NCBI GenBank assembly: GCA_002269645.1
Contig: NIVC01000370.1
Coordinates: forward strand, 1 to 34,620
DNA from: Macrostomum lignano
Lineage: Eukaryota
Reading direction: 5' to 3'
DNA: 34,620 bases
Positions within the stretch are counted from its first letter, which is position 1; the number at the start of each line of letters is the position of its first letter. The notes under the pieces were generated by a model that ran no database searches, was not told the origin of the DNA, and worked only from the letters and a program-made list of their open reading frames with translations. The position numbers were made by a program, and so were the translations under genes. Positions 878 to 33,444 of this stretch are shown here, in pieces.

Positions 878-1940
878 ATTGCTGCTCGGAGCAGAACAGG
901 ACTCAAATGTGTATTTCAACAGGCTTTAAAACTGTTAACGCGATACCATTCAAAAGGGTTACTGAAAGGGCAGAAGCACCAAGCAAACACGAGTCAATAG
1001 GAGACAATTCTGCAGTTGGCTCATAAAAATGTTTGTTATGCTGAGTCCACCACCCGATGGGAAAGTGAGAATGTTTTTCACCTGGTGATTCCTGAGCACA
1101 GAGTTCTTCAGTTCGAGCGGCCCCGCCAGTCCCGCTTGCAGATTCGCTCACGTGACCTGAACGACCACTTGCAGACGCCGGAGCAGCAGTCTTTGTCCCG
1201 CCTGCAGCTCTGACGAAGTGGCTTACAGGAGCGCTTGCGCCTGCAGACTCGCTCACGTGACCTAAAGGACCACTTGCAGACTCCGGAGCAGCAGTCTTTG
1301 TCCCGTCTGCAGCTCTGGCGGTGCTCCTTGCAGGAACGGTTGCGCTTGCAGACTCGCTCACGTGACCTGAACGACCACTTGCAGACTCCGGAGCAGCAGT
1401 CTTTGTCCCGTCTGCAGCTCTGGCGGTGCTCCTGACACGAGCTCACGCACCTGCCTCGTCGACAGTCGCCGGTGCAGCAGCGTCGCCATGGACGGTCGTT
1501 GTCGCATCGGTCGCCTTCGCGCCTGCAAGCGTCTGTGGGATGTTGGGAAAGAATTTTTGGTACGGGTACACGCAATCCAGATATGGTCGTTCACGTCACG
1601 TGAGCGAGTCTGCTACAGCGTACCCGAATTTCTTTTTAGAGCAAAGCAAAGTGAACTCACCAATGCAGCAGATCAACACTGCCGCCATTGCGGCAAGGAA
1701 AATCAGAGTGGCCTTCATGCTTTCAAGTCTCCAAAGAGCAATTAGATCTTTGACTGTAGCAAGGTTAGGGTTGATCCAGACTTTCTGAGAGCTATCGCTT
1801 TTATGGACTATATCTTGCCAATGCAGTATTAATGGACAGCGTGCCAGGAGTGTTACGCAACACGAGCAATGAGACCTTTTGACAATTGATTTTGTCATGT
1901 TGATTAATTAGTACGACGTATCAACGTCCTAATTATTACC
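878..1940 (-). repeat. Left arm of ~1.06-kb inverted segmental duplication (knottin gene plus flanks)
   Basis: Reverse complement aligns with ~2880-3934 across promoter, exons, intron and 3' flank (e.g. TTGAAATACACATTTGAGTCCTGTTCTGCTCCGAGC). Outer limits approximate. Confidence 0.85.
1108..1718 (-). CDS. Secreted four-domain cystine-knot (ICK/knottin-like) precursor, copy 1; exons 1661-1718 and 1108-1532; 160 aa
   Basis: ATG at 1718 gives hydrophobic MKATLIFLAAMAAVLICCI. Phase-1 intron with GTGAGT donor (1660) and CCCACAG acceptor (1533). Exon 2 is open to TGA: DACRREGDRCDNDRPWRRCCTGDCRRGRC followed by 3x C-x6-C-x5-CC-x3-C-x10-C. Spliced length 483 nt, in frame. Confidence 0.9.
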
Positions 1941-3017
1941 TTGTACCAAATTGGAATTTTTATTTGAATTGGCGCATGTTGCAAGTTGCTCATCCGACAA
2001 ATTCTGAAGCAACAAAAACAAGGTTACTTTAGAGAACGAATTGATGTAATGTGTTGTGACATGGCGTGATCGGATCTAGCTATGCTCTTTCAACGGACGA
2101 GGGTTATACGAGCTATGCCTACGTGCTACGTCAAACCGCTGGCCTGACTGACTTCGAAACTTGAGAGGGTGGATCGCGTCGACCAACTCGATCAACCCGT
2201 CCTTGGCCGTCCCGAACTCAAGCCGCAGTCGACAAGGAGCACAGCACAACACGGAACGCAGAACGTACTTAACAAACTATAGGTAAAAATTCTTCGAATA
2301 CGATAATTCTGTCGGTTGATGAGAAGCAACAAATACATGTAATAACGCAGACACGCGGGCAAAGGGGAGAAGAGTGCAATAATGGGCCCACTTGATCGAA
2401 AGCGCAAGCGATTGCTCATCGGTGCAAGTGTACCGGGCACAACTAATGCAAATGGAACATTGCGCAAGAACGCTGCTTCTAAGCTGTGAAAACGGCTCCT
2501 TAACTCGGACATAAATCAGAAAGTTTGATATAGTCGTGGCATAATTCATAAAATCTGATCTTCTCGTACGCTCGTAGTCATGGCATAACTCAGCAAATTT
2601 GCCTAGTGTTGGCATCAGTCAAGGCATCGATCTAGTCGTGGCGGGATTCAACAAAACTTCAAGACATTCATCCTTCGGATTCAGCGCAAGCAGGTGTCGC
2701 TTCAGGTAAACTTCGGTAAGCTGCGAAGACCAGTAATTAACCCTGTTGGAGTAAATGGCTACGTGCACCGATCAAGAGCCAAGTGTTATTAACTGACGGC
2801 TCATCAGCGGTCTAAAAATTGTGGTAAAAAAATGCATAGATAAACAGATGTAATTACCATTCACCTGCTCCATTAATCAGGTAGGTAATTACGACTTTAA
2901 TTATAACTAATTAATACGGCAACATTAACTGTCAATAGTTCTCATTGCTCGTGTTATGCAACATGCCCATCGACCCTGGCACGATGTTCATTATTACTGC
3001 ATTGGCAAGAGATAGTC

Positions 3018-3024
3018 TATAAAA
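3018..3024 (+). promoter_or_regulatory. TATA box of knottin copy 2
   Basis: TATAAAA ~80 nt upstream of ATG 3105, with ATTGG at 3001. The homologous site in copy 1 reads CATAAAA (1799-1805, minus). Confidence 0.55.
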
Positions 3025-3104
3025 GCGATAGCTCTCAGCAAGACTGGATCAACCCTAACTTTGCTACAGTCAAAGATCGAATTGCCTTTTATAGATTTGA
3101 AAGC

Positions 3105-3691
3105 ATGAAGGCCACTCTGATTTTCCTTGCCGCAATGGCTGCAGTGTTGATCTGCTGCACTGGTGAGTTCACTTTGCTTTGCTCTAAAGAGAAATTCAGA
3201 TACGCTGTTCAGCCTGTGCGTGTGTACCCATACCCAACATTCTTTCCCAACATCCCACAGACGCTTGCAGGCGCGAAGGCGACCGATGCGACAACGACCG
3301 TCCGTGGCGACGCTGCTGCAGTGGCGACTGTCGACGAGGCAGGTGCGTGAGCTCGTGTCAGGAGCACCGCCAGAGCTGCAGACGGGACAAAGACTGCTGC
3401 TCCGGAGTCTGCGAGTGGTCGTTCAGGTCACGTGAGCGAGTCTGCAAGCGCAACCGTTCCTGCAAGGAGCACCGCCAGCGCTGCAGACGGGACAAAGACT
3501 GCTGCTCCGGAGTCTGCGAGTGGTCGTTCAGGACACGTGAGCGAGTCTGCAAGCGCAAGCGCAACCGTTCCTGCAAGGAGCACCGCCAGCGCTGCAGACG
3601 GGACAAAGACTGCTGCTCCGGAGTCTGCGAGTGGTCGTTCAGGACACGTGAGCGAGTCTGCAAGCGCGACTGGCGGGGCCGCTCGAACTGA
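3105..3691 (+). CDS. Secreted four-domain cystine-knot (ICK/knottin-like) precursor, copy 2; exons 3105-3162 and 3261-3691; 162 aa
   Basis: ATG 3105 gives MKATLIFLAAMAAVLICCT. Phase-1 intron 3163-3260 (GTGAGT...CCCACAG). Four six-Cys domains with basic linkers. Spliced length 489 nt, in frame. Confidence 0.9.
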
Positions 3692-4067
3692 TGAAGCACT
3701 CGGTGCTCAGGAATCACCTGGTTGACAAACATTCTCTTTCTCCTACATTTACCTGGTGGCGGACTCAACAGAACAGATATTCTTTTACTGTGGCAATATC
3801 TCCTTACAGACTCTTGTTTGCTTGGTGCTTCTGAACTTTCAGTACGCTCGTAACCCTTTTAAATGGTATCGCGTTTACAATTTTATAGCTTGTTGAAATA
3901 CACATTTGAGTCCTGTTCTGCTCCGAGCTGCAATACCACCACGATTTCAGTAAGTCACTTGCAAAAGAAGTCAAAGTGAAGAAATCAAGCTGGCTCGAGA
4001 AGCATTGATTCCTTCTGCTTCTGCCTGCTTTGGCTACCAAATGCATTGATTCAAGAGTATGAAATCA

Positions 4068-4119
4068 AACTGTGAATTTATACTTAATGGTAAAGCGATT
4101 TGTGTCGAAAATTGCAAAT
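4068..4119 (+). repeat. 52-bp dispersed direct repeat, copy A (copy B at 8643-8694)
   Basis: AACTGTGAATTTATACTTAATGGTAAAGC(G/T)ATTTGTGTCGAAAAT(T/C)GCAAAT; 2 mismatches between copies. Confidence 0.8.
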
Positions 4120-5196
4120 GGCAAAAATTGCAAAGTGGAGGCTTGTCTTTCAGTTTCTGGAGCTCGTTTGAAACGAAATATTCTTAGAAATTAACTATCG
4201 ATTTTTAACTATCGAAACTGCAATCTTCGCTGAAATATTTTCTGAAGATATTCAATAACCTCATTTAATTTATCTGCACATCTGCGCACGCTTATTAACA
4301 AGGTAAAGTGATCTTAATTTAAGCATGTTACGCCCAATGTTATTTTTTTAGTCTAATGCAAACTTCAGAAGGTTTTTCTATCAGGAAAGTACAGCACACA
4401 TGCTTTTGCGGCAGTAAAGATCCCATTGCGTGAAGCGAACACCAATGAAATGCGTTATAGAAATCATATATATACTAGCGTTCAGTGAGAATGAAGCCAG
4501 TTTCCGCCTCGTCCGCCCTTGTCCGCTCTCGTCCCCTTGTCTCCTGGCCCTCGCGCCATCGGCTCTCCGCCTCTTCGTCTCCTCAACTGCTCCGCTAGCT
4601 TGCCCCAACAATCGAGCCTGAACTCTGATATCCTGGTCTAACAAAGAGATAAATCTGGACAAACGTCAATTCGTGCAACAGTATCGATAAGTATCCTGTG
4701 GCTCTATTTTCACTGAATTGCTTAACAAATTTGCGTGATAAATATCTTATCAGAAATTGCAACCAACATGAATTAGTAATAAACATCCTTGTTGAAGGTT
4801 AGAGATCGAGAGAAGCAAATCGAACCTCTGACTTATTTAATTCACCAGAAACATCGACGATTGTAGTCATCGTCAAAGAGAGGGGGAACACCCCCAAAAC
4901 ACTTACTCAAACATTTGAAAGGAAAACCAAGACCAGTAGAGAACAAAAACGGCGCTGTTAATATAAGCTGGATTGAAAGCCCCTCGAGATTTGCCCGCAG
5001 TGCATTTTCCTGCAGCGCATTTAGCCACGCGGCGGATTTTGTCTGCACAATGCTTAGTAAGTTTTAATAAAGAGATTTACCGGATCAAAACGTTTTGGTA
5101 GTAACTGTATATCAAATGCATATATTTTTGGGAGGGGGGAAGGCAACGCAGACAGAATCTAGCTGCCAAATGCGCTGCAGGAAAAAGCATTATCAT

Positions 5197-5390: not shown

Positions 5391-7090
5391 ATGCCGAGAA
5401 AATGCAGCGTCATTTTCTGTTGTGCAAACTACAATAGTAACCGTGATCGGAATGTTGCAGTATTTTCATTTCCTAAAGATGCAACTGAACGAGAGGCTTG
5501 GCGACTGTCTCTGCCTAATCAACTGACGGTAAGACTTTCTTCAAATGTGCTTTGTGAATCAGATTTACCCTGGCCACATGAATTCATTAACAATTCTGTT
5601 GTTGTTTAGACCGTGACAGACTACATGGGCGTGTGTGCTAAGCACTGGCCTCAAGATGCACCAATGATAAAAAAGGAAGAATGGTATATGTTCCCCATTT
5701 ATTTTGTTGTCTAGCGGGCAAAAGCAAGAGGTGTCTCGTTTATTGACCGAGGCGAAGCGTGCGAAGCCTCGGTCAATGATCGAGACACCTCTTGCTTTTG
5801 GCCCTAGACAGCTGAATGAGTGGGGAATATGATATGTATCCCCCGTTCGTTGTCTATGGTTGTTGTCTCGAATTTATCAGCCCGCGGGGCAGCGGGAAAT
5901 AAATGATTTATTCACCTAGGGAAATAAATGAAAACATGCGTCACATAGACACTCGCCCGGGGCAAAAGCTACATCCACCATCAGTTTTCGACGGAGTCCC
6001 GCAGTCCTGCCTCGTTCAAACACAAGGTTTGTGAAGTTCTACTGCTCAAATATTTGCACTCCATCAAATAGGGTCGAAACGAAACACTAAGGTGCGTGCT
6101 TGGATATTGCAGTGCATGCCAGTCGACATGCTGAGGGAAGGGGCGTGCTGCTGTCCGAACGATGCCTTTTCCAAGATGAACTAGTAGAATTTCGAGAGCG
6201 TGACACGCTGCCATCGTGGACTGAATTCCGAGCATCCATTCACTGTTCAAACGTCATCAAAGCACATCAGCTTATTGTTACCATTGTTCAAGAGGAGGTA
6301 AAATATTCAGAAAATATTCGGCATCTTCTCGTTAAGCGCCAATGCCGAAATGGTTCTGCGAGTTTTCGTTTCACCAAACTATTCCGTGCGATGCTTTCGG
6401 TTACACTCACCAGTTGCGGTTCGAGATCTGCTTGGATTTCAACCAACATTAAAGTATTGGTCGCAACTTGAAGCTATCATAAATCGTTGTAAAAACTCTA
6501 CAGTGGACGTCGAAAGTGAGGTGAGGGCATTATCTAAGAACCTTTCTATTGCCTTTAACCACGATGGAGTTGTACCGGACACATCGGTTACATTCATCCT
6601 GAAGCTACTCGAGTTCGCCACAACGCACCCAAACAATCGACGATACGACATTGCCACTATGCGCCAATCTGCTTTGCTTTACCTGATTAGCAGTTCTGCA
6701 TACGCGCATGCACAGACGCTCCTTCCTTTGCCCCACCAACGCACATTACGCACTCAGTTGGCTGGTCTAGGAGAGATTGGCACTGAAAATGATGCACACG
6801 AGATCGTAAAGGTCGCATTTGCCAAACTGAAACCGCAGCAGAAGTCTTGTGTGTTGATTTTCGATGAAATGTATGTCCAGCCATCGATTCGCTATCGGTG
6901 CCAACATCTGCTCGGCCAAGCGTCAGACAATCATAACAAAACTGCTCGAACAGTGCTCGCAATAATGTTGAAGCCATTGTTCGGCGGTAAGCCATTTGTT
7001 CTAAGGCTGATACCGATTTTTCTTCTTTCCGCCGACTTTTTGTACCATCAGCTTCGAAAGTGCATTCAACTCGTCAATCAACATGGAGGC
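5391..7090 (+). pseudogene. Truncated, interrupted THAP-domain P-element transposase
   Basis: MPRKCSVIFC...FSFPKD...AW, intron 5529-5609 (GTAAGA...TTTAG), then VCAKHW completes the THAP C2CH motif; PPSVF follows at ~5985. ORF 6350-7126 has LPLPHQRTLR, CVLIFDEMYV (first catalytic Asp), TARTVLAIML and GGKPF, and homology appears to end near HGG, before the remaining catalytic residues. Confidence 0.85.
5687..5965. mobile_element. Foldback/hairpin insertion interrupting the THAP coding region
   Basis: Arms 5708-5753 and 5766-5810 are ~90% reverse-complementary around loop GAAGCGTGCGAA, with outer TTCCCCA/TGGGGAA. It separates KHWPQD from PPSVF. Exact ends uncertain. Confidence 0.65.
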
Positions 7091-7354
7091 CTATTTATCA
7101 TGGTCAGCTCTTGTCCCGTTCTGTGACTGTTACTTTCCTCTCTGTTAGTTCAGATGAAGAAAGAATCGTAAATTTTTCTCGAGTTTCCTTATATATGTGC
7201 TGCATGTACAGCTTTCCCATTGTGCAGCTTCACGACGGTTACTTTATGTAATAAAACTATTCAACATTTAAGAAACCGACCCTGCACCCGCCTTCTGACT
7301 GCCTATCAAAAAGCCAAATATGATACGAGTATACATTGGCAACTGAAAACATGC

Positions 7355-9256: not shown

Positions 9257-11483
9257 TCATCTGTCTGAAATGTTTGTTTACAATTTTTCCAAGTTTCGAT
9301 GATCCATTATGTAAAGAATTCACGAGAAGTCTTCGACACCATGCAAATGTTTACTTACCAAAGTAAATGATGAGCCTGTCTGCAAAATGTATGTCCTTTG
9401 CGTAAGGCACATCTTTCTGAGTAGAGTAGAACATAACTGGCGGACCGGTCTTGACTCCGTCTCGAACCCACTTGCACCCATCTGCAGCGGAGTTGCCGAT
9501 TCCTATGAAGCCTCTGTCGACACCGCAGCCTCCGTGCGTGAACTGGATGTAGAAGTTGCGGCTGGCTCCGTTGCTAAATTTGCTACCCTCGATGGAGAAT
9601 TTCACGAATGAGCCCTTGCCGATCCAATATGGGTAGGACTTGAGCAGTCTGTCCTTTGTGAACCAATTCTCCGAGTTCAGCTTATCGGTGTCCTTGCTCA
9701 CGTCGAAAGTGGCGCTGGCAACCGCCTTGCCGTTGTTGCGCATCTCGGCCACAATCTTGGTGAACCGGTACTTTTTTATGGCTGCGGGCAGATTATCCAG
9801 CAGGCTGGCTCGGAACAGCGTGGGGAAGTCCTTCGTGTGCGTGTCGCCTTTTTTAGTGTTCCTATATTCTACTAGGGCGTCTTTTCCAGAGTGTGCGGTA
9901 ATAGTGAAGAGCAGGACCTTTCCAGAGCCTGCAATAAGCGTTGCGGATCTTTGCAGACTTTGAATTCACAGTAATGGTATTTGATCGCGATCAGAGTTAG
10001 CACTGCACGATTCACCTAGCGCTATAGAATATTTTTTGCATGCTGGCCGAATCATTTTTTGAAGAGAATGTCTAGACGGGGTGAGTAGCGGGGTGTTAAC
10101 CTCTCTGACACTGGTGCCAAAGTACCCTGGTCCATGCCCAGTCACATTTTTCATGGGTTTGTGAACGGAAAGAGACCTGCGAAAGTGTCTGGATTCACAC
10201 CTATGAGAGCCGACCTCAAAGGTACGGAGTGTTGCATTCCTAATTAGGGGAACTCGGGGTCGCTGTACTCCGTTAGTGAGCGTGTGCCTGCCTACACATC
10301 CGGTGTGCGTGCTCTTGGGTCAGAGGAATGGGCCTGACTGCTGGACTCCTCACTGACGTGGGTCGACTGTGGTCAATTTTCGTGGCTGCACCGAAAAACT
10401 ACCAACTGACTGTAAATTTTTTCTGAGCCAGCTTATAGAATGAAGTAAACACTTGGACTATCTGCAACTCACCGAGCCTGTAGGTTTCGATTCTGCCTTC
10501 TAAAATATAAAATCAGTATGCATTACATTTGATTGCTATGCAACTAACCTATGCACAGTGAAGATTAGAATAAAGAGTTGCATGCATTCTTACTGAGATA
10601 GATGACAAACTTGTCTGCAAAATGTATGTCCCTTGCATAAGGTACATCTTTCTGAGTAGAGTAGAACATGACTGGCGGACCGGTCTTGACGCCGTCTCGA
10701 ACCCACTTGCACCCATCTGCAGCGGAGTTGCCGATTCCCATGAAGCCTTTGTCTACATCGCAGCCTCCGTGCGTGAACTGGATGTAGAAGTTGCGGCTGG
10801 CTGCGGTAAATTTGTTGCCCTTGATGGAGAACGTCACGAATGAGCCCTTGCCGATCCAATACGGGTAGGACTTGACCAGTCTGTCCTTTGTGAACCAGTT
10901 CTCCAAGTTCAGCTTATCAGTGTCCTTGCTCACGTCGAAGGTGGCGCTGGCAACCGCCTTGCCGTTTTTGCGCATCTCGGCCACGATCTCCTGGGCGTTT
11001 GCCAGCCTTACAGCATCTGGCAGGTTGTTGAGCAGAGTGGATCGGAATAATTTCCCATTTTGATCCTTTGTGTCGATGTGACCAGCTTTCCGGAATTCAA
11101 CAAGAGCGTCTTTGCCGAAGTGAGCGCTGATAGAGAACAGAAGTACTTTCCCATGTTCTGCAAGTATAAAATTTTGGTTTCTATAAGGTCGTAGTAAAGA
11201 ATTTGATCAGAGACAGTATGACCAAGACTTAAGTTTTTCAGAAAAGAGCTGCTGTGTGCAAAGTCTCTCTTCACCTGGTTCGTTTGGGAATCCGGCATCT
11301 ACAAAGCGAAAAGGTTTCATTTTATTTGGTCTGACTTTGATAAAATTTGAATCTAGCACTTGTTATATAGAACAGTATAGCACAGTTATATAGTATAGTT
11401 CAAATTCTATCTGTACCAGCAGAGATCAGCAAAGCAGTGAAGGCCAGCAAAGCAGTCAATGCTGCTCCAGCTTGATTCGACAT
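9257..11483 (-). CDS. Secreted protein with two tandem ~190-aa uncharacterised modules; exons 11417-11483, 11275-11298, 10594-11157, 10473-10499, 9359-9928, 9257-9264; ~419 aa
   Basis: Signal peptide MSNQAGAALTALLAFTALLISA. All five introns are GT-AG and phase 1. Internal exons of 24, 564, 27 and 570 nt are all multiples of 3. The modules share KVLLF, LFR-x-x-LL-x-NLP, ENWFTKDRL, YPYWIGKGSF and RNFYIQFTHGGC. The last micro-exon is uncertain (alternative stop at 9351). Confidence 0.75.
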
Positions 11484-14004: not shown

Positions 14005-14802
14005 CTCCATCCACATCTCCATCCTCATCTCCATCCACATCTCCATCCACATCTCCATCCTCACCTCAATCCTCATCTCCATCCTCATCTCCATCCTCAC
14101 CTCAATCCTCATCTCCATCCTCATCTCCATCCTCATCTCCATCCTCATCTCCATCCTCATCTCCATCCTCATCTCCATCCTCACCTCCATCCTCATCTCC
14201 ATCCTCACCTCAATCCTCATCTCCATCCTCATCTCCATCCTCACCTCAATCCTCATCTCCATCCTCATCTCCATCCTCATCTCCATCCTCATCTCCATCC
14301 TCACCTCAATCCTCATCTCCATCCTCATCTCCATCCTCATCTCAATCCTCATCTCCATCCTCACCTCAATCCTCATCTCCATCCTCATCTCCATCCTCAT
14401 CTCCATCCTCATCTCCATCCTCACCTCAATCCTCATCTCCATCCTCATCTCCATCCTCACCTCAATCCTCATCTCCATCCTCATCTCCATCCTCATCTCC
14501 ATCCTCATCTCCATCCTCACCTCAATCCTCATCTCCATCCTCATCTCCATCCTCACCTCAATCCTCATCTCCATCCTCATCTCCATCCTCATCTCCATCC
14601 TCACCTCAATCCTCATCTCCATCCTCACTCCATCCTCACCTCAATCCTCATCTCCATCCTCATCTCCATCCTCACCTCAATCCTCATCTCCATCCTCATC
14701 TCCATCCTCATCTCCATCCTCATCTCCATCCTCACCTCAATCCTCATCTCCACCCTCATCTCCATCCTCATCTCCACCCTCATCTCCATCCTCATCTCCA
14801 TC
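14005..14802 (+). repeat. 12-bp (6-bp based) microsatellite CATCTCCATCCT / CACCTCAATCCT, ~66 units
   Basis: Direct reading. It generates the artefactual HPHL, ISIL and MRME ORFs. Confidence 0.95.

Positions 14803-15518: not shown

Positions 15519-33444
<17,926 letters not shown>

Follow-up and report, generated by a model that had tools for sequence, protein, structure and literature searches.

Knottins, which carry the inhibitor cystine knot (ICK), provide some of the most useful natural scaffolds for studying ion-channel pharmacology and for the design of peptide drugs, and the multivalent knottins DkTx and Hi1a show unusual avidity. Two kinds of multi-domain precursor are already known, namely tandem ICK proteins, such as SCREPs (secreted cysteine-rich repeat proteins) and double-knot toxins, and repeat precursors that are cleaved at dibasic sites (PMC6262176, PMC9885460, PMC13172734). 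As defined by Maxwell et al., SCREPs have a secretion signal and at least two tandem disulfide-rich domains (PMC6262176); their linkers should carry no dibasic convertase sites, so that the domains are not separated. According to ScrepYard, dibasic linkers are convertase sites, and the linkers of true SCREPs are short, polar or Pro-rich (PMC9885460). A putative triple ICK was reported in spiders in a 2026 study, in which a triple ICK was stated to be previously undescribed (PMC13172734). Here, we describe a pair of paralogous genes, A and B, in a stretch of Macrostomum lignano DNA of 34,620 nucleotides (assembly GCA_002269645.1, contig NIVC01000370.1, positions 1 to 34,620 of the forward strand; hereafter, the window), each of which encodes an Arg-rich precursor with four knottin-like domains. 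The features that are new here are a sequence family without a close relative, the presence of four knots, the mixture of fused and potentially cleavable linkers, and the extreme Arg content. Our leading reading, which we hold tentatively, is that the locus is a recent divergent gene pair and that each gene encodes a secreted four-ICK precursor cut into knots acting outside the cell.

Structure and conservation of the two genes

Both gene models were rebuilt by script. The two-exon genes are arranged divergently (head-to-head), with gene A on the minus strand (1108-1718) and gene B on the plus strand (3105-3691). Positions 1108 and 3691 are the ends of the two stop codons; the initial annotation, which had placed two paralogous two-exon genes at 1108-3691, was therefore exact at both ends. 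The parts of the two genes are as follows.

1718-1661, minus strand: coding part of gene A exon 1, with the ATG at 1718, the signal-peptide sequence MKATLIFLAAMAAVLICCI and base 1 of codon 20
1660-1533, minus strand: gene A intron, 128 nt, phase 1, GTGAGT...CACAG
1532-1108, minus strand: coding part of gene A exon 2, with four knot domains, the linkers VSS/KRNRS/RRKRS, the tail KRDWRGRSN and the stop codon
1527-1447 (D1), 1437-1348 (D2), 1332-1243 (D3) and 1227-1138 (D4), minus strand: gene A domains
3105-3162, plus strand: coding part of gene B exon 1, 58 nt, with the ATG at 3105 and the signal peptide MKATLIFLAAMAAVLICCT
3163-3260, plus strand: gene B intron, 98 nt, phase 1, GTGAGT...CACAG
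3261-3691, plus strand: coding part of gene B exon 2, with the linkers VSS/KRNRS/KRKRNRS, the tail KRDWRGRSN and the stop codon TGA at 3689-3691, next to which lies a second in-frame TGA
3266-3346 (D1), 3356-3445 (D2), 3461-3550 (D3) and 3572-3661 (D4), plus strand: gene B domains

The products of genes A and B are 160 and 162 aa long, respectively, and share the N-terminus MKATLIFLAAMAAVLICC[T/I], which consists of an n-region and a hydrophobic core of 16 residues (in both, residues 3-18 have a mean Kyte-Doolittle value of 2.66). The predicted signal-peptide cleavage point was judged by eye, to within 1-2 residues. In both proteins the first Cys domain directly follows the hydrophobic N-terminus, and a pro-region is absent. 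D1 has the sequence DAC-RREGDR-C-DNDRPWRR-CC-[ST]GD-C-RRGR-C and thus the spacing C-x6-C-x8-CC-x3-C-x4-C, and D2-D4 are three copies of the pattern C-x6-C-x5-CC-x3-C-x10-C. D1 and D2 are joined by VSS, the next two linkers read KRNRS, RRKRS in A but KRNRS, KRKRNRS in B, and both proteins end in the tail KRDWRGRSN. Each mature protein contains 24 Cys (17%) and approximately 25% Arg; the net charge is +24 in B and +28 in A, and the two mature proteins are 91% identical. A six-frame regular-expression scan of all 34.6 kb of the window found the C-C-CC-C-C pattern solely at the eight domains of A and B, and its occurrence there is therefore not due to chance. In all these respects, namely the signal peptide followed without a pro-region by four six-Cys domains, the two spacings within framework VI/VII, the asymmetry between VSS and the basic linkers, the KR-DWRGRSN end and the Arg richness, the rebuilt proteins agreed with the initial annotation.

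Analysis of inverted-repeat pairs and a global alignment of the arms showed that both genes lie within an inverted duplication of approximately 1.03 kb, the arms of which are parted by a unique spacer of approximately 1 kb (1916-2904). Besides the two exons and the intron, each arm carries approximately 200 nt of TATA-containing upstream sequence and approximately 240 nt of 3' flank.

878-1915, no strand: left arm of the inverted duplication, containing gene A in full, with its putative promoter, both exons and approximately 240 nt of 3' flank
2905-3934, no strand: right arm of the inverted duplication, with the whole of gene B
1798-1805, minus strand: TATA-like element of gene A, CATAAAAG, a putative promoter element approximately 87 nt upstream of the ATG that aligns with the element of gene B
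3018-3025, plus strand: TATA box of gene B, TATAAAAG, a putative promoter element 87 nt upstream of the ATG

The identity between the arms was 0.81 in the 5' flank, 0.966 in exon 1, 0.847 in the intron (plus a 30-nt indel), 0.944 in exon 2 and 0.839 in the 3' flank. The Nei-Gojobori comparison of A and B gave dN = 0.038 and dS = 0.137 (dN/dS = 0.28), and nonsynonymous changes were the fewer (Fisher p = 0.003). The open reading frames (ORFs), all 48 cysteines and identical canonical splice-site pairs are intact in both copies. With exons that have diverged less than the intron and flanks, and with a dN/dS of 0.28, both copies look functional and are presumably expressed. In the conserved 3' flank, only the variant signal AATACA was present, and the canonical AATAAA was not found. 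The antisense ORFs that run across the repeats (903-1361 and 3358-3768) are by-products of the repeat.

Predicted knottin fold and relatives of the repeat

All eight domains fit the ICK framework, as C6C8CC3C4C in D1 and C6C5CC3C10C in D2-D4. The AlphaFold2 model of a single repeat, built on a 16-sequence alignment, had a mean predicted local distance difference test (pLDDT) value of 84, with a core at 90 or above, and contained a hairpin between Cys V and Cys VI (strands 25-28 and 33-36). Its best match in the PDB, found with Foldseek, was SOTI-III (template modeling scores TMq 0.68 and TMt 0.79, root-mean-square deviation 1.2 A, probability 0.99), and further matches included maurocalcin, Magi4, omega-atracotoxin-Hv1, Tst2 and psalmotoxin. 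Knottins or ICK toxins made up 22 of the 26 PDB matches, the E-values of which are not significant for domains so small. The whole mature protein, modeled on a two-sequence alignment, gave a pLDDT of 74 and a predicted template modeling score (pTM) of 0.33; this model consists of four separate units, each with the hairpin between Cys V and Cys VI. Its Foldseek matches, also with non-significant E-values, included Magi4, Tst2, Pn3a, huwentoxin-X, psalmotoxin, DkTx and the remipede double-ICK toxin Xt3a, and the two top ranks were occupied by Dickkopf.

When the repeat profile was compared with PDB sequences, ICK peptides alone were retrieved: nemertide alpha-1 (E = 1.4e-3), maurocalcin (E = 4.8e-3), delta-conotoxin Am2766, imperacalcin, omega-conotoxins and atracotoxin. 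The repeat aligns with maurocalcin without gaps, with the six Cys in register and 11 identities in 31 positions. For D1, the best PDB sequence matches were the tarantula peptide U1-TRTX-Sp1a and the cactus antimicrobial knottin Ep-AMP1, both weak (E = 0.12-0.18). Thus, as far as framework and predicted fold are concerned, the knottin assignment made in the initial annotation is well supported by the modeling, the Foldseek matches and the PDB profile search.

Three other assignments were considered and rejected. A Dickkopf/colipase-type domain does not agree with the data despite the Foldseek matches to Dickkopf and colipase, as Dickkopf_N scored at most 17.5 bits, below its cutoff, and such domains need ten Cys per unit. 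A protamine-like or other nuclear basic protein is ruled out by the signal peptide, and a minicollagen-type cysteine-rich domain by its different Cys pattern.

Among single-domain peptides, the scorpion calcins (maurocalcin and imperacalcin; Toxin_27) have the same spacing as domains 2-4, share the KDCCS motif and are likewise strongly basic, and maurocalcin took second place in the PDB profile search and third place among the Foldseek matches. However, calcins are single-domain scorpion peptides released from propeptide-bearing precursors, whereas the domains of A and B are arranged in tandem and come from another taxon, and Toxin_27 scored 9.8 bits (E = 1.1) against a cutoff of 25. Cell penetration and activation of the ryanodine receptor are functions of the calcins. 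The framework VI/VII conotoxins of the O-superfamily share C-C-CC-C-C, and the spacing of D1 resembles that of omega-conotoxin; nemertide alpha-1, the best match of the profile, shares the motif C-x-W-x-F (CGWNF vs CEWSF). Unlike conotoxins, A and B have neither an O-superfamily signal sequence nor a pro-region, and the Pfam family Conotoxin scored 10.2-12.2 bits against a cutoff of 25.1, over the Cys core only. Nemertide and conotoxin precursors carry one toxin domain each, and the E-values are marginal; with sub-threshold scores here and single-domain precursors there, membership in either family was rejected.

A multi-domain comparison is provided by the SCREPs and double-knot ICK toxins (DkTx, Hi1a/Hc1a and remipede Xt3a; ScrepYard). 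They share with A and B the signal peptide and the tandem ICK domains within one exon, and A and B have the secretion signal and tandem disulfide-rich domains named in the SCREP definition; the VSS linker between D1 and D2 is free of dibasic sites and, like the linkers of true SCREPs, short and polar, and both DkTx and Xt3a appear among the Foldseek matches. However, double-knot toxins have two domains, whereas A and B have four. In addition, the D2-D3 and D3-D4 linkers contain KR/RR, so two of the three linkers would be excluded under the ScrepYard rule and would fall into its cleaved class, and A and B differ from SCREPs in having no propeptide and no detectable sequence family relationship to them.

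All Pfam families matched by the proteins are knottin-toxin families (UPF0506, Toxin_29, Toxin_21, Omega-toxin and Conotoxin). UPF0506 (PF11703), a knottin-fold family of undefined function that occurs in flatworm secretomes (PMC8400842), was the only one to exceed its whole-protein cutoff, with 28.3 bits for B and 23.6 for A against 23.2. These scores are the sums of two to three partial repeat matches; a single repeat scored 18.4 bits, and the match of one domain covered only positions 34/35-56 of the 59 in the profile. A and B resemble UPF0506 in passing its cutoff and in their predicted knottin fold, but differ in covering the profile partially and in passing the cutoff only through summed repeats. 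An unrelated bacterial tandem-knot protein reached 38 bits on UPF0506, and bacterial proteins scored higher than A and B on both UPF0506 and Conotoxin_I2. Since bacterial proteins score higher, the Pfam matches report the cysteine framework and not family membership, and because the matches are framework-driven, the two genes were not filed under UPF0506, calcins or conotoxins.

Searches for relatives support the statement of the initial annotation that the family was not recognized. Neither the precursor nor the 16-sequence repeat alignment had a match in a word-indexed search of 5.8 billion proteins, no close relative was found among approximately 15 billion proteins, a metagenome scan with the two paralogs gave no match, and a literature search for peptide strings of the proteins found them in no paper. 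An exhaustive HMMER search of 1.84 billion cluster representatives returned 11 matches at E < 1e-3, none of which was below 1e-10. The best of them (E = 5.8e-9 to 3.6e-7) are 26-36% identical, and about half of the identities are cysteines. They include the Babylonia areolata (whelk) protein XP_076435068.1, with four repeats of D2-type spacing, a long pro-region and acidic linkers; hypothetical proteins of Dinothrombium tinctorium (velvet mite), e.g., RWS12282.1, with six knots; and the EukProt transcript P301795, labeled Bolivina argentea (foraminifer), with ten knots, in which D1-like/D2-like pairs are fused via CSC. The other matches are metagenomic proteins with twin-arginine-type signals.

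The motif C-x6-C-x2-D-x-[DE]-CC-S-x2-C-x-[WY] is common to the query and the tandem-knot relatives. The Babylonia, Dinothrombium and Bolivina-labeled proteins share with A and B the C6-C5-CC-3-C-10-C repeat, the D-x-[DE]-CC-S motif and, two positions beyond Cys V, an aromatic residue, and the directly joined pairs of the Bolivina-labeled protein resemble D1-VSS-D2. Unlike A and B, these uncharacterized proteins are not Arg-rich but acidic or neutral, and none of them has basic linkers.

A second metagenome scan, based on an alignment of tandem-knot arrays, detected 44 loci (L004-L047; e.g., L007 at 3479-4909, L012 at 40-1536 and L023 at 2951-4273). Among the 15 of these that were translated, most lie on contigs with 67-73% GC and have lipoprotein-like signals and 33-79 Cys in repeats; one ORF with 53% GC contains 158 Cys. 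The metagenomic arrays carry the C-x6-C-x5-CC-S-x2-C module, and tandem knottin-like repeat proteins seem to be widespread and unstudied in bacteria. One locus with 39% GC (L009) looks eukaryotic and encodes a signal peptide and a double knot 41% identical to the query. Taken on their sequences, A and B constitute an orphan Arg-rich family within a knottin-like superfamily.

Possible processing of the precursor and candidate roles

In both genes, [KR]R stands directly after Cys VI of D2, D3 and D4, the last of these sites preceding the non-domain tail. Gene A contains a perfect R-R-K-R site, and the linkers and tail carry about half of the net charge. On this pattern, cleavage at the basic linkers is plausible, and we consider it somewhat probable that the precursor is processed there. 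A similar layout is known from multi-copy precursors cut at dibasic sites, e.g., sea-anemone Ugr 9a, endothelin, neuropeptide and antimicrobial polyproteins, in which a signal peptide is followed by Cys-rich units split by KR/RR (PMC6262176, PMC9885460). These differ from A and B in having other folds and, usually, spacer propeptides, whereas in A and B the basic site abuts Cys VI and the D1-D2 junction has no site.

Under the leading reading, that of a secreted precursor cut into extracellular knots, each gene would be transcribed from its TATA promoter, and the phase-1 intron just after the signal peptide would be spliced out. The protein would enter the endoplasmic reticulum and lose a signal peptide of approximately 18-19 residues, and each six-Cys unit would form a knot with a beta-hairpin lying between Cys V and Cys VI. 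Proprotein convertases of the secretory pathway would then cut after the [KR]R next to Cys VI of D2, D3 and D4, and a carboxypeptidase would trim the basic residues left after cleavage. The predicted products are the double knot D1-VSS-D2 (62 aa, approximately 7.4 kDa, charge +5 to +7; oxidized masses of 7367 Da in gene B and 7380 Da in gene A), two single knots (31-33 aa, approximately 3.7-4.1 kDa, charge +5 to +6; 4085 Da in gene B, 4000 and 3688 Da in gene A) and a short peptide from the tail. Outside the cell, the cationic knots may act as stable ligands of a membrane target, in defence or prey capture. An ion channel would be the most likely target, because the repeat has the calcin cysteine spacing and resembles omega- and delta-conotoxins and nemertide alpha; the aromatic residue after Cys V, together with this likeness, slightly favors a role as a channel ligand. 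The charge and the match of D1 to Ep-AMP1 keep a host-defence role in play. The labels of toxin, antimicrobial and seminal peptide given in the initial annotation are guesses, and for a seminal role nothing that was computed supports or bears on it.

Several observations weigh against this reading. Basic residues are not significantly enriched in the linkers over the rest of this Arg-rich protein (12/21 vs 34/98, p = 0.08), and the domains themselves contain basic pairs (CRR, WRR and CRRD). Most of the [KR]R sites have no Arg at P4, unlike classical furin sites. In the remote tandem-knot relatives, which are probably uncut, the linkers are acidic or neutral. The toxin matches, in sequence and in structure, are all weak (E of 1e-3 or worse) and reflect, for the most part, the shared cysteine framework. 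The knottin disulfide connectivity (I-IV, II-V and III-VI, the third bond threading the ring) is a prediction from the gapless maurocalcin alignment. The protein was not found in the searched protein collections. Finally, a dN/dS of 0.28 is unlike the diversifying pattern typical of many venom peptides, although between two converting paralogs this ratio is a weak test of venom-type diversification.

Some of these points speak for secretion of the whole protein (approximately 17.1-17.5 kDa) as a tetravalent, strongly cationic tandem knottin of SCREP type, in which the basic linkers would be flexible charged spacers and multivalency would provide avidity for targets that are multimeric or repetitive, e.g., multi-subunit channels, polyanionic surfaces or glycosaminoglycans. 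Arrays that look uncut and have non-basic linkers, with four (Babylonia), six (Dinothrombium) or ten (Bolivina-labeled) knots, are the closest relatives; the linkers show no significant excess of basic residues over the domain loops, and P4 Arg is missing from most sites, which points the same way. Double-knot toxins act via bivalency (PMC6262176), and the putative triple ICK of spiders (PMC13172734) offers a further precedent. However, the [KR]R after every D2-type Cys VI, including the one before the non-domain tail, resembles a conserved processing signal, the composition of the linkers is unlike that of genuine SCREP linkers, and the RRKR site of gene A is ideal; an intact, tetravalent precursor is therefore rather unlikely in our estimate. 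The small remaining weight falls on partial processing, at some of the sites, and on a slight chance that the genes are not expressed. Non-functional loci, whether two pseudogenes from a recent duplication or ORFs that never undergo splicing or expression, would be consistent with a conserved 3' flank that contains AATACA and no AATAAA; in addition, an inverted exon copy in the gene A intron could interfere with splicing, and gene conversion could hold two dead copies alike. We nevertheless regard this explanation as very improbable in view of the ORFs, which are intact across 160-162 codons with every Cys kept, the dN/dS value and its significance, the higher conservation of the exons than of the flanks and intron, and the fact that both copies conserve the TATA box as well as the splice signals.

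Whether cut or uncut, the proteins could also be antimicrobial or antifungal knottins of host defence that bind microbial envelopes or chitin through their charge. Alo-3, PAFP-S, Ep-AMP1 and the tachystatins are cited as knottins acting on microbial envelopes or chitin, and multi-copy precursors with basic spacers are common among antimicrobial peptides. The extreme charge of the precursors and of each predicted peptide would suit such a role, U1-TRTX-Sp1a and Ep-AMP1 head the matches of D1, PAFP-S and Alo-3 are among the Foldseek matches, and the purifying selection suits housekeeping defence as well as venom. However, channel toxins gave stronger matches than antimicrobial knottins did, and charge alone does not discriminate, as calcins and omega-conotoxins are equally basic, so that a defence role appears unlikely, though deserving of consideration. 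Far less can be said for knottin-type serine-protease inhibitors, possibly multi-headed and like the plant squash/Mirabilis type. The top Foldseek match, SOTI-III, is a spinach trypsin inhibitor in complex with trypsin, and the loops of the repeat are rich in Arg/Lys, which are potential P1 residues; but the likeness to SOTI-III is one of fold only (28% identity, E = 0.14), no inhibitor family was matched by sequence in Pfam or in the PDB profile search, and the single-repeat model matches many channel toxins equally well. This makes inhibition of proteases the least credible of the explanations, and an extremely improbable one.

A four-knot, highly cationic precursor that has no close relative among approximately 15 billion proteins would add a sequence family to the knottins and perhaps also an architecture, either mixed fused/cleavable or tetravalent. 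A more far-reaching possibility, which we consider distinctly unlikely, is that in a lineage-restricted orphan family one transcript delivers a mixed payload of a permanently fused bivalent double knot and monovalent calcin-like knots freed at dibasic sites, the two copies being tuned by a concerted Glu/Lys switch beside Cys V of all three repeats, or that the protein is the first intact tetravalent four-knot polycationic ligand. In either case, the multivalent ICK repertoire would be extended beyond two (putatively three) domains.

Evolution of the array and the surrounding sequence

The three D2-type units differ at 0-13 of 90 nt, and the third and fourth domains of gene B (B3 and B4) are identical. 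In gene B, the adjacent 111-nt units at 3444-3554 and 3555-3665 are 100% identical, whereas the corresponding units of gene A differ at 12 of 90 nt in the knot core. The residue next after Cys V is Lys (AAG) in all three repeats of A and Glu (GAG) in all three repeats of B. Because this site is gene-specific across all three repeats, the pattern indicates very recent homogenization within each gene, probably by unequal crossing-over or gene conversion. In bivalent spider ICK toxins, intra-exonic duplication was described, together with unequal crossing-over favored by the similarity between domains (PMC13172734), and the repeat evolution of spider Hc1a corresponds to that of the knottin pair in both respects, as exemplified by B3 and B4. 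The locus is thus a clean, small example of array evolution that combines an inverted gene duplication, intra-exonic amplification, an identical 111-nt pair and a gene-specific residue switch.

One further rearrangement is found in the intron of gene A.

1584-1613, minus strand: 30 nt inserted into the intron of gene A, reverse-complementary to the part of exon 2 that codes for WSFRSRERVC; the gene B intron has no such insertion

The insertion is 97% complementary to 1348-1377 and 90-93% complementary to the other two repeats. In the gene A pre-mRNA, a long-range stem of approximately 28 bp is predicted that would leave the 3' splice site looped out (minimum free energy of -131 kcal/mol vs -106 kcal/mol for shuffled sequences, z = -4.8). 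Such a stem could affect splicing or provide a double-stranded RNA substrate.

None of the other features of the window, including a transposase, duplicated exons and a cadherin gene, suggests a functional link to the knottin genes. No Rfam family was matched anywhere in the window, and an exact-sequence look-up of a neighboring ORF gave no record. Between the knottin pair and the next genes, the ORF at 6350-7126 (plus strand) matches TNP-like RNase H N-terminal and P-element transposase helix-turn-helix domains (27.2 and 17.9 bits) and is a fragment of a THAP9/P-element-type transposase. The ORFs at 9351-9752 and 10565-10984 (minus strand) lie 1233 nt apart, are 90-93% identical at the DNA level and each end at a GTAAGT donor, so that they look like tandemly duplicated exons or genes; they share the conserved motif NFYIQFTHGGC...GIGNSAADGCKWVRDG and had no Pfam match and no meaningful PDB match. 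A large cadherin gene occupies approximately 13900-34620 on the plus strand, and its exons at 32323-32802 and 32990-33364 match the Pfam family Cadherin. Its apparent introns are full of minisatellites, with a 21-nt unit repeated 103 times (30143-32302), a 22-nt unit repeated 50 times (17793-18879) and a 12-nt unit repeated 67 times (14005-14802), and several of these arrays have extreme GC skew. Upstream of the left arm of the duplication, at 434-460, a run of ten G is flanked by GAATTCCCCC and forms a short, non-coding G/C palindrome. At 5716-5803, two 38-nt arms (92% complementary) around a 12-nt loop make a near-perfect hairpin, which could represent a small foldback element or one resembling a miniature inverted-repeat transposable element.

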